From sequence record NC_047838.1: a stretch of DNA of 64,000 nucleotides; one strand, 5' to 3'. A program made the position numbers and the translations under genes. Each line of letters begins with the position of its first letter. The stretch's first letter is position 1. This document shows positions 1,415 through 7,662 of the stretch, one piece after another. The notes beneath the pieces are model-generated. The model searched no databases. It was not told where the DNA came from and saw only the letters and a program-made list of their open reading frames with translations.

Positions 1415-1461
1415 ACAAGTGGCACAGAGCGTCTCCTAGGGGTCTCTCTGTGCTTTATACT
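1404..1461 (+). promoter_or_regulatory. Early-type cassette 2: palindrome + hairpin + -10
   Basis: AAGACAGTT-AAAC-AAGTGGCAC (1404-1425), stem GCACAGAG/CTCTGTGC (1422-1453), TATACT 1456-1461. Confidence 0.7.
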
Positions 1462-1482
1462 ATTGACATCAACAGAACACAC

Positions 1483-2673
1483 ATGCTTACCCTTCGTCCA
1501 CATCAAGAACGCATCAACGATCGTATGCTTGCATATAACAAGGGTCAGATCATCGTGCCTACTGGTGGTGGCAAAACTTTGACCATGATTGTTGATACTC
1601 AGCGTCGTCACGATGCTATCAACAACGGCACCACCACAGTTGTTGTTGCTCCGCGTATTCTTTTGGCAGAGCAACTGTGCTCTGAGTTTCTGGAGATTAT
1701 TGATACTTCCCACACGCATGTGATGCACGTTCATAGTGGTGAAACTCATCACTACAGCAACACAAAACCCGTGAACATTCATGTCTTCGCTAATACTGCG
1801 CGGAACATGGGTGAGAACTGCATCATCTTTACTTCTTATCATTCCCTGCATCGTGTGATGGAGGCAGATATTGAGGTGAATACTATTTACTTTGACGAGG
1901 CACATAACAGCGTTCAGCGTAACTTTTTCCCTGCGACTGAGTTCTTCGCTAATGATGCAGATCGTTGCTATTTCTATACTGCAACGCCTAAGCATAGTCT
2001 GACTATTTCTAAACCAGGCATGAATGATGCTGCTGTTTATGGTCAGGTTCTTATCAACGTTCCTGCTCCTGAACTTGTCGAGCAGGGTTACATTCTTCCC
2101 CCCAAAGTTGTAGTGAAGCAACTGCCTTTGATTAAAGGTCGCAAGGTGATGTATGCTGATGATTGTGACAATCTGATTGAGACTATCGATGACAACAACA
2201 TCGACAAGACTTTGATCTGTGCTCGCACCACAAAGCAGATTATCAACCTTTTGACTTACTCTGACTTCTGTGCTGAACTTGCTCGGCGTGGATATTCTTG
2301 GATGACGATTACATCTAAGACAGGTGCAATTATCGACGGCAAGAAAGTTGACCGCGAGAAGTTCTTCGACACGTTGAACGCTTGGGGCAAAGATTCTGAG
2401 AAAAAGTTTGTTGTTATCCACCACAGTATTCTGTCTGAAGGTATCAACGTCAGCGGACTCGAAGCAGTCATCTTTATGCGTAACATGGACTACATCGGCA
2501 TCAGTCAATCTATTGGTCGTGTGATTCGTTTGGGTGGAGATTCTAAGACCTTTGGTCTAGTTTGCATCCCAACTTATGACTCTGTGGGTATTGGCACCGC
2601 TCGTAAAGTTCAGGCAGTTGTTGATGTTGTCTTCAACAAAGGTGAACCCGCTATTAGTGAGATTCGTCGATGA
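1483..2673 (+). CDS. SF2 DExH helicase/ATPase, ResIII/Type ISP-like (paralogue A)
   Basis: LRPHQ, PTGGGKT (Walker A), FTSYHS, YFDEAH, YTATP, ILSEGINV, QSIGRVIR. Start placed at ATG 1483, downstream of the -10 and aligning with paralogue B. Confidence 0.9.
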   Translation: MLTLRPHQERINDRMLAYNKGQIIVPTGGGKTLTMIVDTQRRHDAINNGTTTVVVAPRILLAEQLCSEFLEIIDTSHTHVMHVHSGETHHYSNTKPVNIHVFANTARNMGENCIIFTSYHSLHRVMEADIEVNTIYFDEAHNSVQRNFFPATEFFANDADRCYFYTATPKHSLTISKPGMNDAAVYGQVLINVPAPELVEQGYILPPKVVVKQLPLIKGRKVMYADDCDNLIETIDDNNIDKTLICARTTKQIINLLTYSDFCAELARRGYSWMTITSKTGAIIDGKKVDREKFFDTLNAWGKDSEKKFVVIHHSILSEGINVSGLEAVIFMRNMDYIGISQSIGRVIRLGGDSKTFGLVCIPTYDSVGIGTARKVQAVVDVVFNKGEPAISEIRR

Positions 2674-2994: not shown

Positions 2995-4392
2995 ATGCAA
3001 CTGCGACCCCATCAACAGGTCATGCTTGACGCGATGGAGAGCAATCGCAAAGGTTATCTGACTTGCGGCACTGGTGGCGGCAAGACACTCACCTTCATCA
3101 CTGATTCTCGTCGATTCTTGACACCAGGCAACGTAATTGTTGTTGTTGCTCCTCAACTTCTGTTGTCTGAGCAACTTTTCAGTGAGTTTGATTTTCATCT
3201 CTCTGATATTGATTTTGTCTATCGTCAGGTATCTTCCGAATCTAAAACTTGGCAGCGTGATCGTGCCAACCTCAAGTTTCGTATGAAAGTGCAACCTGAC
3301 TCGCCAAATACAGGGATTGATGAGATTAAGCGCACATACGAAGTAGCACAAAAAGCAAATCTACCGCTGATTTTATTCACTACCTATCAGAGTCTTGAGC
3401 GTGTAAATGGTGCTAACCTGCCTATCACTGCTGTTTATTTTGATGAGGCACACAATGCCTGCTCTGTTGATTCTTTTAATGCTGTAGAGTCTATCAGCGC
3501 CACCGCAAAACATGCGTATTTCTTTACTGCAACCCCTCGCCGCAGTGAGTCTGAAACTGGCAAAGGTTTCGACAATACTAATGTATATGGTGAGCACATT
3601 GCTAATATCAAGTTCTCCGAACTGCTTGAATCTGGTGCGGTAGTTAAACCCTACCTTCACCTACAAACTAGTAACGCTCAGCAAAAGAATCTTGATGAGA
3701 TTTCTCTTGACGTTGATACTCTTATGGAGACTGTCAACTATTATGAGAACACACACTTTACGACTGGAGCACACAAGATTTTGGTTGCATGTCGCGGCAC
3801 CACTAACATTCAAGGTATGCGCCTTGCTATGCTCAAGTGGGCAAATGACAAGGGTTACGATCTTCTCTCTGTTGATAGTGTCAATGGTGGTTACATGAAC
3901 GGGACACAGATCTGTGCTCCTAATGCTAAAGGTAAGTTCCTTGATAAACTTGATGAACTTGGTAAGGATTTGACCCGCAAGATGATTGTGCTTCACTACG
4001 ATATGCTTGGTGAGGGTATTGATGTCAAAGCATTTACAGGTACAGTTTTCCTGCGTAATATCTGCTCTAACATCAAAGCAGTGCAGGCAATGGGTCGTGT
4101 GATTCGCTCATCCCCCGGCAAGAAATATGGCATCGTGACTATCATTCAGCACGATGACGATACTGATGATGCGTGGTATGCAATCTCTTCTATTGTCAAT
4201 CAACTTATCACTCAAGGTGTGCCAGTTGAAGAGATCCTGACTGAAGTATCTGGACGCGGTAAAGAAGAAGAAACTATTGAAGATCTTCAGGAAGACATCA
4301 GAAAGCGTATTGCAGATTATGACATCAAGTGGTGGCACGATATTATGATTCAAGAACTTGTGTCTAGCGGCGATCCTCTGGACATCCTCTGA
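2995..4392 (+). CDS. SF2 DExH helicase/ATPase, Type ISP/ResIII-like (paralogue B)
   Basis: LRPHQ, GTGGGKT, FTTYQS, YFDEAH, FTATPR, MLGEGIDV, QAMGRVIR; longer acidic C-terminus than paralogue A. Confidence 0.9.
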   Translation: MQLRPHQQVMLDAMESNRKGYLTCGTGGGKTLTFITDSRRFLTPGNVIVVVAPQLLLSEQLFSEFDFHLSDIDFVYRQVSSESKTWQRDRANLKFRMKVQPDSPNTGIDEIKRTYEVAQKANLPLILFTTYQSLERVNGANLPITAVYFDEAHNACSVDSFNAVESISATAKHAYFFTATPRRSESETGKGFDNTNVYGEHIANIKFSELLESGAVVKPYLHLQTSNAQQKNLDEISLDVDTLMETVNYYENTHFTTGAHKILVACRGTTNIQGMRLAMLKWANDKGYDLLSVDSVNGGYMNGTQICAPNAKGKFLDKLDELGKDLTRKMIVLHYDMLGEGIDVKAFTGTVFLRNICSNIKAVQAMGRVIRSSPGKKYGIVTIIQHDDDTDDAWYAISSIVNQLITQGVPVEEILTEVSGRGKEEETIEDLQEDIRKRIADYDIKWWHDIMIQELVSSGDPLDIL

Positions 4393-4396
4393 CCTT

Positions 4397-4453
4397 GTGA
4401 CAGAAAATAAGTGTCACACCATCCCCCCAGAGGGGATGATTTTCCTATATTAT
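4397..4453 (+). promoter_or_regulatory. Early-type cassette 4: palindrome + hairpin + -10
   Basis: GTGACAGAA-AAT-AAGTGTCAC (4397-4417), stem CATCCCC/GGGGATG (4420-4438), TATTAT 4448-4453, GGAG RBS. Confidence 0.75.
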
Positions 4454-4474
4454 TAAATCAACTCATGGAGACAC

Positions 4475-5728
4475 ATGCCCGCAGTGATTGAAGCAACTCC
4501 CGCCGCCAAGCGTCAGGCATTGCTAACCTATTACAAAAAAGGGATCAAACCTGTTGACCCTAGGCAACCGATTGCTGAAGATCTGGCGCAGCAGATGGTT
4601 CAGGATCTAGAAAAGTGTAATGTTTCAAAGGACGCAACGATAGGTGTTTTTGATACTTTTCTGACACTGACTCTTACACTTCAAGAGCATGGATATACTA
4701 ATATCGTGTATTTTGAGAACAAGCACACAAACTTGACGCCAGATCAGGAGAAATACTATAATACTATTGAGCAAGGATGTAAAAAGATAGGCGTTACATA
4801 TTACATCCCCCCTAAAAACAACTATAGTTGGTGTAATATGAAGTTTGATGTTATTATCGGTAATCCCCCATACAACAAATCAGAAAAGGTTGGATCACAG
4901 AGAGGATCTGCCAATTCAGCATTGTGGTGGGAAATTACACAACAATCTCTCAAACTTCTTAAACCTAATGGAATCATTTCTTTTATTACACCCTCAAACA
5001 TTGTAAATGGTGCAGATAAGTTCACCTCTATTGTTTTGGGTAATGCCCGCAAATATGACCTGAGAACTGTTGATTTTGGTTGTTCCAATTTCTTCAAGGT
5101 TGGTATTCCTATCTGTCGTTGGGTTGCTGTCAACAAACTGACCACAGATAACAATGTTGTTGTCACTGATGGTCGTGTTCTTGATACAACCAACACCCTG
5201 AAGATCAATGAGGATGTCATTTATGACGAAATCCTTCATGATATGTTTAACTCAGAGTATGATAATCTGAATTTTAATATGAAACAGTGTTATCAATATC
5301 AACAGGTTGAGGGTTATCTTAAGAAGAAAAATCTTCCTATTGAATGGGCAAAAGATTTAAAAAAGACTCAAGATGATGTGTATAAGTATCCTGTAAACAT
5401 TAACGGTAAAATTAAGTTTTCCCGAGTAAAGTGGCGGATGAATGGCATACCTAGGTTGTTTATTCCTAAGATGCAAAATCCTATGACTATTGAATACTCT
5501 AGAGAATGGGAAGCAGATGGGTCTACATTTACCATGGTATTTGATACCAAAGAGGACGCACTTCTGACCAAAGGTTATCTTGACAATCCTCTTTATCGTT
5601 GGGTAATTGAACAAACCCGTGTAAGTGGCAGACTTAATGCAAACATTATTTGCAAACTTCCTAACGCTCCCATTGAAAAGATTCTGACTGCTGATCAACT
5701 CGCATACATTCAATCTCAACTTTCCTGA
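4475..5728 (+). CDS. N6-adenine DNA methyltransferase-like protein (Eco57I/gamma type) with catalytic NPPY and TRD-like C-terminus; SAM-binding motif I degenerate
   Basis: KFDVIIGNPPY (NPPY at 4862-4873), SLKLLKPNGIISFITPS; the expected motif I position reads IGVFDTFL with no glycine-rich loop. Confidence 0.8.
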   Translation: MPAVIEATPAAKRQALLTYYKKGIKPVDPRQPIAEDLAQQMVQDLEKCNVSKDATIGVFDTFLTLTLTLQEHGYTNIVYFENKHTNLTPDQEKYYNTIEQGCKKIGVTYYIPPKNNYSWCNMKFDVIIGNPPYNKSEKVGSQRGSANSALWWEITQQSLKLLKPNGIISFITPSNIVNGADKFTSIVLGNARKYDLRTVDFGCSNFFKVGIPICRWVAVNKLTTDNNVVVTDGRVLDTTNTLKINEDVIYDEILHDMFNSEYDNLNFNMKQCYQYQQVEGYLKKKNLPIEWAKDLKKTQDDVYKYPVNINGKIKFSRVKWRMNGIPRLFIPKMQNPMTIEYSREWEADGSTFTMVFDTKEDALLTKGYLDNPLYRWVIEQTRVSGRLNANIICKLPNAPIEKILTADQLAYIQSQLS

Positions 5729-5729
5729 C

Positions 5730-6293
5730 ATGAAACTTCAGCACACATTTGGACATGATTGTGAAGATCTCTCTTCATTAGTTGCAGAGAACAAACTATC
5801 AAAGTTCTTCAAGAAGTTGGTAGAGTTAGCTAAGAAACAAGATCCAGATTTTTATGATCCATTAAAGTTCATGGGAGACGGATTTGAATGGTTTGGCGAA
5901 TACTTCTTCAAATTCTTCAATGGGGATCATACCTTGACATATACAGCAAACTATGAACCAAACTTCGATTATGATCGCGGCATTGATGGTCGTGGACTCT
6001 CCACACTTGACGGACTGCCTAATGTCATTCAATTTAAGTTTAAGGCAGATCCCACTAAGTATCTGACAAACGATGATAATATCAGTAATGTTGCAGCAGA
6101 TGCAACTATGAATGAAGGTCTACAATATAATGGAAAGAATGTAATTATTGTCACCTCATGTAAGGGAGTCCATCCTAAACATGCTATGGCAAATGTGCAT
6201 TGCATCAGTTACAAAGACATGGCAAGACGTGTGGACAATAATGTAATTTTCTGGGATAATCTTAGAAGCATCGTAGAAGAGCAATATGCCTAA
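5730..6293 (+). CDS. Putative Mrr-family PD-(D/E)xK-type endonuclease
   Basis: GDGFEWFGEY (E53) ... DRGID (D82/D86) ... VIQFKFK (Q101-x-K103); starts 1 nt after the methylase stop. Confidence 0.65.
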   Translation: MKLQHTFGHDCEDLSSLVAENKLSKFFKKLVELAKKQDPDFYDPLKFMGDGFEWFGEYFFKFFNGDHTLTYTANYEPNFDYDRGIDGRGLSTLDGLPNVIQFKFKADPTKYLTNDDNISNVAADATMNEGLQYNGKNVIIVTSCKGVHPKHAMANVHCISYKDMARRVDNNVIFWDNLRSIVEEQYA

Positions 6294-6690
6294 AAAGAAC
6301 AAGCACAATGAAAACGTAGGATCTGAAGTTGTCAGGTCCGATGAACGTATTGATGCAACTGGTGAAGTATTCACACCAGTGGTGCTTTGCACTGAGATGA
6401 TATTAGAGATCCCTGAATCTATCCTAAAAAATGACAAGAGTAGATTTATGGACAACTCAGCAGGGTCAGGAAACTTCCTACTAGCATTGCAGACAGAATT
6501 ATTGAAATATCACTCTTTATCACACATCAACGATAATATGCTCTATGGAGTAGAACTTATGGAAGATAATCATGCAGAAATGTGCAATAAACTAGGTGTT
6601 TCGGTTGATCATCCACATTTTGTGTGTGCAAATGCTCTAGAATATGATTATTCTTTCGGGGAACCAGTCGGACTAGAAATGTTCATGTGA
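6286..6690 (+). CDS. Stand-alone N-terminal (SAM-binding) half of an N6-adenine methyltransferase
   Basis: GEVFTP (motif X), FMDNSAGSGNFL (motif I), LYGVEL (motif II), VCANAL (motif III); ends before any NPPY/DPPY; overlaps the nuclease stop. Confidence 0.75.
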   Translation: MPKKNKHNENVGSEVVRSDERIDATGEVFTPVVLCTEMILEIPESILKNDKSRFMDNSAGSGNFLLALQTELLKYHSLSHINDNMLYGVELMEDNHAEMCNKLGVSVDHPHFVCANALEYDYSFGEPVGLEMFM

Positions 6691-6744
6691 CAGTTGACGA
6701 ACCGGACACAATCGCTTGCAATCCGCTGATCGATGCGCTATCTT
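6687..6744 (+). promoter_or_regulatory. Early-type cassette 5
   Basis: GTGACAGTT-GACG-AACCGGACA (6687-6708), TTGCAA 6716-6721, 17 nt spacer, TATCTT 6739-6744. Confidence 0.7.
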
Positions 6745-6750
6745 AAGAAC

Positions 6751-7662
6751 ATGAAAAACACACATCTCCAACACCCCGAAGATTCTATCCTGACGGGTGA
6801 TCTTTCTGCACTCGATTGGTTGCTCTCCGATGGTGAAATTTCTGCGAAGATTGATGGCGCTCCCGCGATTGTATGGGGGACGAATCCGGCGACGGGTAAA
6901 TTCTTTGTTGGTACAAAATCGGTCTTTAATAAGAAACTTATCAAGATTAACGAAACTCATAGTGACATCGACGCTAATCATTCTGGCGATGTTGCTGATA
7001 TACTACACCATTGCCTTGATTATCTTCCTGATTTCGACGGGATTGTTCAAGGTGATTTTATTGGGTTTGGTGGTGATGATACTTACTGCCCCAATACGAT
7101 TACTTATGTCTTTGATGAAATAATTGAGAAAGATATTATCATCGCACCTCATACTTTGTATGCAACTGATGGTGAGATGAAAGATGCCTATGTTATCAAC
7201 GACATGGTAGATATGGAGATCTTCGATGATAATGATTATGTAAAGTTCGTGCAACCAAAATGTTGGCAAGTTGATGAAGATTTCGATGAGATTGTTGCAT
7301 TTGCCAAGCAAATGTCGTGTATGTGTGAGTTTCTGAGCCCCAAGCAATCGCAACAGGTTCAGCAACAACTTAACAGCATTATTCGTGCTGGTCTGGATAT
7401 TGATGACCTGACCATGGATGCGCTGGCATTTGCAAACAAAATCGACGTGAATGTTTTGCGTTTGTGGTCACTCGTTAAGTCAATCAAGGATGATATGTTG
7501 TTCCTGATGCGGAATAATGGTCCTAAAGCATACATCGGTCGCCAAAGGTGTGGTGGCGAAGGTTATGTCAAGATCAATCAATTTGGTATGTTCAAGTATG
7601 TCAACCGAGAGCAATTTTCTCATGCTAACTTCAATAATGGTAGGTTTGCTTGTGCCGGTTGA
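6751..7662 (+). CDS. Conserved phage protein with ATP-dependent ligase/nucleotidyltransferase-like motifs (DUF6267-like)
   Basis: KNTHLQHPED, SAKIDGAPAIVWG (KxDG), VQGDF, GGEGYV, FKYV; ATG 6751 lies just after the -10. Confidence 0.6.
   Translation: MKNTHLQHPEDSILTGDLSALDWLLSDGEISAKIDGAPAIVWGTNPATGKFFVGTKSVFNKKLIKINETHSDIDANHSGDVADILHHCLDYLPDFDGIVQGDFIGFGGDDTYCPNTITYVFDEIIEKDIIIAPHTLYATDGEMKDAYVINDMVDMEIFDDNDYVKFVQPKCWQVDEDFDEIVAFAKQMSCMCEFLSPKQSQQVQQQLNSIIRAGLDIDDLTMDALAFANKIDVNVLRLWSLVKSIKDDMLFLMRNNGPKAYIGRQRCGGEGYVKINQFGMFKYVNREQFSHANFNNGRFACAG

Follow-up and report, generated by a model that had tools for sequence, protein, structure and literature searches.

The locus described here lies in Synechococcus phage Bellamy, a marine cyanophage of the Kyanoviridae whose sequence is 100% identical to this region, and contains three consecutive genes, encoding gp86, gp87 and gp88, in which a DNA methyltransferase divided between separate proteins had been proposed. 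The window, that is the whole stretch of DNA that was analyzed, covers 64 kb of the record NC_047838.1 (window position = record position - 62000), and the positions given for Bellamy refer to it (Table 1). The original prediction placed the catalytic NPPY motif and the loop binding S-adenosylmethionine (AdoMet) on two different genes, in reversed order and with another gene in between. The coordinates agree with this arrangement, because gp87 is located between gp86 and the gene of the AdoMet half, and the latter is the downstream one. Since gp87 intervenes and the AdoMet half lies downstream, a single frameshift cannot account for the split. Consensus matching at the locus revealed no terminator-like hairpin between gp86, gp87 and gp88.

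Table 1. Features of the gp86–gp88 locus and its upstream neighbors in the Bellamy window
Feature	Position	Strand	Description
gp86 (gene 86)	4475..5728	+	417 aa; record annotation "DNA methyltransferase"
gp86 N-lobe (N*), residues 30-120	4562..4834	+	motif X-like RQPIAEDLAQQMV; beta1 IGVF, then D60; E81
gp86 motif I position, residues 56-63	4640-4663	+	IGVFDTFL; shortened, without glycine loop
gp86 motif II acid, E81	4715-4717	+	
gp86 motif IV, residues 130-133	4862..4873	+	NPPY
gp86 C-terminal target-recognition domain, ~residues 236-417	5180..5725	+	superposes on M.TaqI C-terminal domain
gp86 stop/gp87 start junction	5726..5732	+	TGA-C-ATG, 1-nt spacer
gp87 (gene 87)	5730..6293	+	187 aa; record annotation hypothetical; phrog_7683
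gp87/gp88 overlap	6286..6293	+	8 nt, ATGCCTAA
gp88 (gene 88)	6286..6690	+	134 aa; record annotation hypothetical; phrog_4376
gp88 motif X, residues 26-31	6361-6378	+	GEVFTP
gp88 motif I, residues 56-64	6451-6477	+	DNSAGSGNF
gp88 motif II, residues 86-90	6541-6555	+	LYGVE
gp88 motif III, residues 116-118	6631-6639	+	NAL
gp88 conserved tail	6643-6687	+	YDYSFGEPVGLEMFM
Terminator-like hairpin between helicase gp85 and gp86	4420..4438	+	consensus match only
gp83	1450-2673	+	ResIII/DEAD helicase; directly upstream of the locus
gp85	2995-4392	+	ResIII/DEAD helicase; directly upstream of gp86

The sequence of gp88 matches the Pfam family N6_Mtase with a score of 22.2 bits (cut-off 20.4), only over model positions 24-89 of 311, and it matches phrog_4376 with E = 1e-73. 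Motifs X, I, II and III were found in gp88 where they had been predicted, and the open reading frame (ORF) stops ahead of motif IV, which is absent from gp88. The canonical D/E-x-x-G-x-G signature is present in the Bellamy pair only in gp88, and not in gp86. The end of gp88 (ANALEYDYSFGEPVGLEMFM) corresponds to the point at which single-chain relatives continue into strand beta4 with the sequence FDVVVGNPPY; one of them, P0045, reads GDALKFDYWGGMKFDVVVGNPPY. In the AlphaFold2 model, which was built from 41 sequences and has a predicted local distance difference test score (pLDDT) of 89.4, N-terminal helices including motif X are followed by beta1 (54-56), alphaA, beta2 (86-90), alphaB, beta3 (112-114) and a non-strand tail. 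The modeled sheet has the order beta3-beta2-beta1, without beta4, and the beta1 edge is free, so that gp88 is predicted to be a three-stranded half of a Rossmann sheet, and only half a fold. The Foldseek matches of gp88 were the N-terminal parts of CamA, Type I HsdM, LlaGI/LlaBIII, BsaXI and DrdV. Among 41 diverse homologues of gp88 the residues G60, G62, D94 and P31 are invariant, and E27, F29, T30, N95 and F124 are nearly so.

By its domain content gp88 is an N-terminal fragment, and it could be what is left of a second, truncated methyltransferase gene that is decaying and has no function. However, a scan of IMG/VR found relatives of gp88 encoded in 469 viral contigs, of which the best 80 are the loci analyzed below. 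The length of gp88-like proteins is also maintained at ~132-136 aa across cyanophage genera, the ratio of nonsynonymous to synonymous substitution rates (dN/dS) of gp88 against eight close relatives is 0.14-0.23, and gp88 is more conserved than the neighboring gp86. The substitution pattern indicates that gp88 is a working gene under purifying selection, which makes its origin as a pseudogene extremely unlikely. The pseudogene, frameshift and programmed-frameshift readings were rejected on the grounds of conservation, the dN/dS values and the variable lengths of the gene overlaps.

The upstream protein, gp86, matches the Pfam family Eco57I with 53.9 bits (cut-off 25.3) and phrog_3689 with E = 3e-146. 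The NPPY motif and the lack of G-x-G in the sequence IGVFDTFL were both located as predicted, and no other ORF in the window carries an NPPY-type motif. Among 44 homologues of gp86 the residues N130, P131 and P132 are invariant and Y133 is nearly so, as are P32, G57 and E81. The consensus of this family at the motif I position is IGVxDAFL, also without G-x-G, with the loop after beta1 shortened to a glycine-less D-[A/T]-F, while that of the motif X-like segment is GRQPIPDELAxxMV. The two Bellamy proteins together tile one Type II methyltransferase model of PADLOC (PDLC03273, 432 positions), with gp88 residues 26-72 aligned to model positions 44-90 and gp86 residues 98-413 aligned to positions 105-413. 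All of these profile matches exceed chance by a wide margin. The original prediction had also considered that gp86 could be a catalytically dead DNA-recognition subunit, in which case methylation, if any, would be carried out elsewhere. This would fit the absence of the glycine loop and the fact that, within one family, gp86 is the variable, specificity-like module. On the other hand, the NPPY residues are conserved as described above, their ORF is the sole one of its kind in the window, and no other catalytic chain is at hand, because gp88 has no catalytic motif. The conservation of NPPY hence makes a dead gp86 very unlikely.

The AlphaFold2 model of gp86, based on an alignment of 44 sequences, has a pLDDT of 90.9 and contains beta1 (56-59), alphaA (64-71), beta2 (77-80), alphaB (89-104), beta3 (108-110) and beta4 (124-129), which is followed by NPPY. 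The best structural match was M.TaqI, followed by CamA and M.BseCI (Foldseek, VIA), and residues 31-399 of gp86 superpose on residues 21-407 of M.TaqI with a Z score of 19.2 over 320 residues (VIA). Hence, the model presents gp86 as a full-length TaqI-like protein with a complete class I Rossmann fold rather than as half an enzyme. The proposal that each of the two proteins lacks exactly what the other has was overstated, since the model and its superposition on M.TaqI suggest that gp86 lacks only the glycine loop and has an N-lobe. The regions of gp86 were compared by dN only, because synonymous sites were saturated. Against eleven homologues the dN values were 0.15-0.35 for the N-lobe, 0.29-0.55 for the catalytic lobe and 0.34-0.71 for the target-recognition domain (TRD), which means that the N-lobe is the slowest-evolving part of gp86 and the TRD the most variable. 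When the N-lobe of gp86 was compared with the gp88 family using hhalign, the alignment was in register, but its probability of 1.3% was not significant, and therefore the common descent of these two lobes is not shown by sequence.

The genomic neighborhood of gp88 relatives was compared across the IMG/VR loci. The data showed that in 73 of the 80 loci an NPPY-family ORF is located directly upstream on the same strand. In 46 of these the two genes form a direct pair, mostly with an overlap of 1-11 nt and without gp87, and the other 27 are trios of an NPPY gene, a gp87-like gene and a gp88-like gene. Three further loci have as the upstream partner a helicase-fused NPPY or NLPF ORF of 1069-1113 aa. 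In the remaining four the upstream DNA is too short to hold a complete ORF; L062, which is among these four, ends in a truncated partner-like ORF. Thus, an NPPY partner was present upstream in 76/76 informative viral loci, which bears out the co-occurrence of homologues on which the original prediction depended, and gp88 homologues without NPPY are not routine. Overlaps of 1-14 nt are the usual arrangement at these loci, and most gp86-gp87-gp88 trios have overlaps (-4 to -14 nt) comparable to that in Bellamy. Such start/stop overlaps are consistent with translational coupling of gp86, gp87 and gp88. Pairs were also found in the genomes of phage isolates, with two in S-CAM7 (gp056+gp057 and gp076+gp077), one in P-SSM2 (036+037) and one in S-SKS1 (215+214). 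In MA01 a 1074-aa helicase-NPPY fusion is followed by an ORF and then by the AdoMet lobe, and the gene order in ACG-2014f is AdoMet lobe, gp87-like gene, NPPY gene.

Near-identical AdoMet lobes are paired with five types of NPPY chains, which are the gp86-type (360-450 aa), the S-CAM7_056-type (~330 aa), the S-SKS1_215-type (413-539 aa), a short type (193-241 aa) and a helicase-fused type (1015-1177 aa; e.g., L006 28-3252 and L051 642-3833). The canonical D/E-x-x-G-x-G does not precede NPPY in any of these five architectures, which have "GDPxGxHS", "DAxGxF", "EPGxG" or "DAF" at the motif I position instead, and the motif II acid after beta2 is kept in all partner N-lobes. By contrast, the motif I of gp88 is invariant. 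Some partners have no N-lobe. The P-SSM2 036 protein starts at motif IV (MKFTLAIGNPPY), and the gene upstream of it encodes an unrelated glycine-rich protein. In lobe-less partners, beta1-beta3 would have to come from the small protein for a Rossmann fold to arise. At another locus, L043, an NPPY gene starting at beta4 (MRFSVIIGNPPY) is preceded by a GIY-YIG-like ORF on the minus strand (3802-4359), a possible homing endonuclease, and the absence of the N-lobe there may be a recent disruption.

A search with gp88 of 1.84 billion representatives gave 617 matches, many of which are stand-alone proteins of 100-180 aa. Three of the matches, P0025, P0043 and P0045, are single chains in the canonical order, in which the AdoMet lobe leads directly into FDVVVGNPPY. 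Two others, P0019 (399 aa) and P0118 (416 aa), are permuted fusions, with NPPY in the N-terminal part and a gp88-like lobe at the C-terminus; they start at MFNIIVGNPPY or MENFYVVGNPPF, and each of them was recovered twice, from independent samples, the contigs being phage-like. The C-lobe of gp86 aligns to residues 2-92 of P0019. The homologue search with P0019 returned matches to the AdoMet lobe only, and no full-length relatives. In the L091 contig, the start of P0019 is overlapped by an ORF of 174 aa (4125-4649) with a PD...ECK motif, which precedes the permuted methyltransferase; judged by these motifs, the two look like a pair of a small nuclease and a methyltransferase in a phage-like contig. 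Another match, the 2803-aa protein P0027, aligns to gp88 in seven separate stretches, which suggests repeated segments resembling the AdoMet lobe.

In bacteria, a scan of 185,579 species genomes yielded 60 cellular loci. The gene order is canonical in ~26 of them and permuted in ~12, including those of Fischerella, Geodermatophilus, Cellulomonas and Curtobacterium ammoniigenes NBRC 101786. In the latter a 308-aa protein starting at beta4 (MRVKFDVILTNPPF) is followed by an AdoMet lobe of 178 aa. In 16 other loci the match was the N-lobe of an Eco57I-like protein of ~505 aa, and an upstream AdoMet lobe was present in all five of these that were checked. A detectable partner is missing in ~3 informative loci, and altogether, of the cellular loci that were checked, about 90% or more have an NPPY partner. 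Seven loci contain an operon encoding an AdoMet lobe (218-245 aa, EPACGxGNF), the ~505-aa Eco57I-like protein, and then a protein of 835-990 aa, which NCBI names a GIY-YIG nuclease family protein or restriction endonuclease (L140 4280-9860, from Acidaminococcus fermentans, and L126, L114, L116, L119, L139 and L142). The ~505-aa protein has a near-normal motif I, DPxxK(S/T)GVF, NPPY near residue 192 and a CxxC insert. The second and third genes of this operon tile one PADLOC Type IIG model (PDLC03626). By its sequence features, the operon appears to hold the same combination as Bellamy, namely a full chain and a spare canonical lobe.

The partners of gp88-like proteins also appear to have been exchanged. 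Between Bellamy and the locus L012 the identity is 89% for gp87 and 86% for gp88, but only 44% for gp86. In the gp88 tree the partner types are clustered, although not cleanly, and their distribution takes at least 32 changes as compared to the minimum of 6. For instance, the gp88-like gene of L026 groups at zero branch length with its counterparts in L022 and L023, in a clade with full support, yet its upstream partner is different. There is therefore no evidence in the comparison of the gp88 tree with partner type for strict co-speciation of gp88 and the partner gene, and the pattern reads as module exchange. In these comparisons gp88, together with gp87 where it is present, seems to behave as the constant module, and the chain with NPPY and the TRD as the variable one. 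The gp88-like genes of lobe-less partners are scattered in the tree among those of lobe-bearing partners, which suggests a single mode of action for both.

These data strongly support, at the level of sequence comparison, a functional partnership of the AdoMet lobe with the NPPY chain as the best reading of the locus, because of the linkage of the genes, their coupling, the selection on gp88, the lobe-less partners and the fusions in both orders. Nearly all related phages and many bacteria have this pairing, and thus it looks like a real multi-chain enzyme. The part of the proposed complementary split that stands is that the genes behave as one unit, as judged from linkage, overlaps, selection on gp88, fusions and lobe-less partners, while the view of gp86 as a half does not agree with its complete predicted fold. 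We consider it somewhat probable that gp86, gp87 and gp88 are co-transcribed and coupled genes of a multi-chain N6-adenine methyltransferase of the Eco57I/M.TaqI type, in which gp88 is a separate AdoMet lobe. In such an enzyme gp86 would bring the catalytic NPPY lobe and the TRD, and gp88, with its motifs X, I, II and III, would be the canonical AdoMet lobe, a 134-aa protein in its own right whose gene comes after that of the catalytic chain. The free beta1 edge of gp88 and its conserved YDYSF tail could dock on the C-lobe of gp86, and this docking would set AdoMet beside NPPY. The glycine-less N-lobe of gp86 would then serve for structure or docking and not for cofactor binding. What the analysis shows directly is the linkage of the genes, their motif content, how each chain folds by itself, the purifying selection and that fused and lobe-less relatives exist; the physical association of gp86 and gp88, the identity of the AdoMet-binding chain in Bellamy and the biological target are what we infer here from the comparisons described.

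Several observations weigh against this arrangement. The predicted Rossmann fold of gp86 is complete and includes a canonically placed N-lobe, and therefore gp88 cannot simply fill a gap. This N-lobe keeps the motif X-like segment, D60, a small residue at position 61, and E81, and its having the lowest dN within gp86 would fit with AdoMet binding being retained by gp86. The motif I of M.TaqI is likewise non-standard. Furthermore, two distant gp88 homologues, P0010 and P0017, have no NPPY neighbor; their contigs are short (1.3-2.7 kb), and given this shortness they are uninformative rather than counter-examples. Some of the same observations are explained if gp86 is sufficient on its own as a methyltransferase, its motif I being compact and glycine-less, and gp88 is an accessory AdoMet-binding sensor or regulator. 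In addition to the complete predicted fold and the strong conservation of an N-lobe that includes the motif X-like segment, D60 and E81, this is supported by the motif II acid in all partner N-lobes, by the bacterial ~505-aa chains, which have a near-normal motif I and still have a separate AdoMet lobe upstream, and by the high identity of gp87 and gp88 between Bellamy and L012 as compared to that of gp86. However, it leaves unexplained the partners without any N-lobe and the permuted fusions, and the sheet modeled for gp88, which is incomplete and leaves the beta1 edge free, would be unusual in an autonomous sensor. Overall, a self-sufficient gp86 appears rather unlikely. In Bellamy itself, either gp88 displaces or bypasses the N-lobe of gp86, or gp86 binds AdoMet itself and gp88 is accessory.

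The middle gene does not look like an incidental intervening one, because the gp86-gp87-gp88 trio recurs in 27 of the 80 viral loci. The residues G49, D50, E53, D82, G84, D86, Q101 and K103 are invariant in gp87, and the pattern of E53, D86 and Q101-x-K103 resembles that of Mrr-type PD-(D/E)xK nucleases. Look-alikes of gp87 in the ESM Atlas, which were found by a language model, carry Mrr_cat_2/Mrr_cat domains, and some of them are fused to ResIII helicases. On the other hand, no match was found for gp87 among PDB sequences, with either the single protein or the profile, or in Pfam or PADLOC. From the motifs and the language-model look-alikes, gp87 is probably an Mrr-type PD-(D/E)xK nuclease. 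In the loci L022 (5474-5950), L026 (3408-3884) and L014 (3159-3608) gp87 is replaced by an ORF of 149-158 aa (MKFQVIRPFSV...).

The two helicases, gp83 and gp85, are paralogous, and they match the PADLOC models of PbeA and of Type IIG/Type I fusions. The Mrr-like features of gp87 and the flanking helicases make the locus resemble a split restriction-modification enzyme; together, gp87 and the helicases would give it the composition of a Type IIG/ISP enzyme divided into separate genes. If gp88 were only accessory, it might couple the availability of AdoMet to the activity of the gp87 nuclease or the methyltransferase, by analogy with the allosteric role of AdoMet in Type I, III and IIG enzymes. 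A coupling to gp87 is, however, at odds with the 46 loci in which gp88 follows an NPPY gene and gp87 is missing. Upstream of the helicases, a gene of a 2-oxoglutarate (2OG)-Fe(II) oxygenase (Pfam 2OG-FeII_Oxy_5, phrog_81) is located at 455-991. On the other side of the locus, gp89 (6733-7662; DUF6267, phrog_455) is a neighbor that is also found 3' of the gp88-like gene in several of the loci, e.g., L014, L022, L026, L042 and L085, and its K-I-D-G segment (SAKIDGAP) recalls motif I of nucleotidyltransferases and ligases.

To our knowledge, split DNA methyltransferases are known only as the rare C5 cases of M.AquI and M.EcoHK31I, and arguments about how the alpha, beta and gamma motif orders of amino-methyltransferases arose have drawn on models and engineered proteins. 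We tentatively propose, as a possibility that falls somewhat short of being probable, that the gp88 family consists of previously unrecognized, widespread free-standing AdoMet lobes, that many different NPPY/TRD chains of phages and bacteria use them as a constant and exchangeable subunit, and that living examples exist of each stage of a change in topology. These stages would be a single gamma-type chain, a full chain with a spare lobe, two half-genes in either order, and a fused, beta-like permuted chain. One natural family would then combine a conserved, separate gene of the cofactor lobe with diverse catalytic and recognition chains. As its canonical, split and permuted-fused members coexist, both the permutation pathway and the minimal needs of a two-chain Rossmann active site become testable with a few clonable gene pairs. 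Many small phage and bacterial genes, which are now called "hypothetical" or a generic methylase, are thereby flagged as probable methyltransferase subunits, and the data point to a restriction-modification-like module divided into separate genes in abundant marine cyanophages.

In the library that was searched, no account came up of this gene pair or of a natural N6-adenine (amino-) methyltransferase divided in this manner, and a recent classification of methyltransferase topologies has no split class (bioRxiv 10.1101/2023.12.13.571470). The natural two-polypeptide enzymes on record are the C5-cytosine methyltransferases M.AquI and M.EcoHK31I (PMC3404938). In these, as in gp86 and gp88, the catalytic motifs are spread over two adjacent genes; in Bellamy the genes are apparently coupled, with motifs X and I-III in gp88 and motif IV onwards in gp86. 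In the C5 enzymes, however, the break falls behind motif VIII or at motif IX, and the genes either follow the order of the motifs or are nested, while the Bellamy enzyme would be of the N6-adenine type, split between motifs III and IV, with the cofactor lobe encoded last. Moreover, the large chain of Bellamy retains a redundant-looking lobe, so that gp86 does not share the feature that neither chain is complete alone; P-SSM2 036 and the 308-aa protein of Curtobacterium do.

Among single-chain enzymes, gp86 is most similar to M.TaqI, CamA and M.BseCI, which belong to the gamma class (topology A, C-terminal TRD) and have the same order of X-like, I-like, II, III and IV motifs and TRD. Those enzymes have one AdoMet lobe, in contrast to Bellamy, where an NPPY chain without the glycine loop is accompanied by a separate canonical lobe downstream. 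Thus gp86 has the fold order, the TRD and the motif IV of the gamma class, while the motif I is not in the same chain. The locus can also be compared with Type IIG/ISP enzymes (MmeI, BpuSI, DrdV, LlaGI/LlaBIII), which contain an Mrr or PD-(D/E)xK nuclease, a gamma-type methyltransferase and a TRD, with a superfamily 2 (SF2) helicase in the ISP enzymes. PADLOC Type IIG models are matched here, and related loci fuse a helicase to the NPPY chain. In contrast to those single polypeptides, the Bellamy genes (gp83/gp85, gp86, gp87 and gp88) are separate and are located in a lytic phage, and the likeness to restriction-modification is one of gene content.

In the beta-class amino-methyltransferases (M.RsrI, M.PvuII, CcrM) the motif order is IV-VIII, TRD, X, I-III (PMC7544214). 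The same order of NPPY lobe, TRD and AdoMet lobe is found at the operon level in Bellamy and in a single chain in P0019 and P0118. Unlike in the beta class, the parts are separate proteins in Bellamy, and the sequence similarity is to the gamma-type Eco57I/N6_Mtase families rather than to the beta-class family. The circular permutation of methyltransferases has been described by permutation-by-duplication and fission-fusion models (Jeltsch 1999 and Bujnicki 2002, as cited in PMC3320104), which were framed mainly on single-chain enzymes. In the family described here the predicted stages coexist: the canonical chain, the full chain with an extra N-lobe, the separate genes of C-lobe and N-lobe, and the fused permuted chain.

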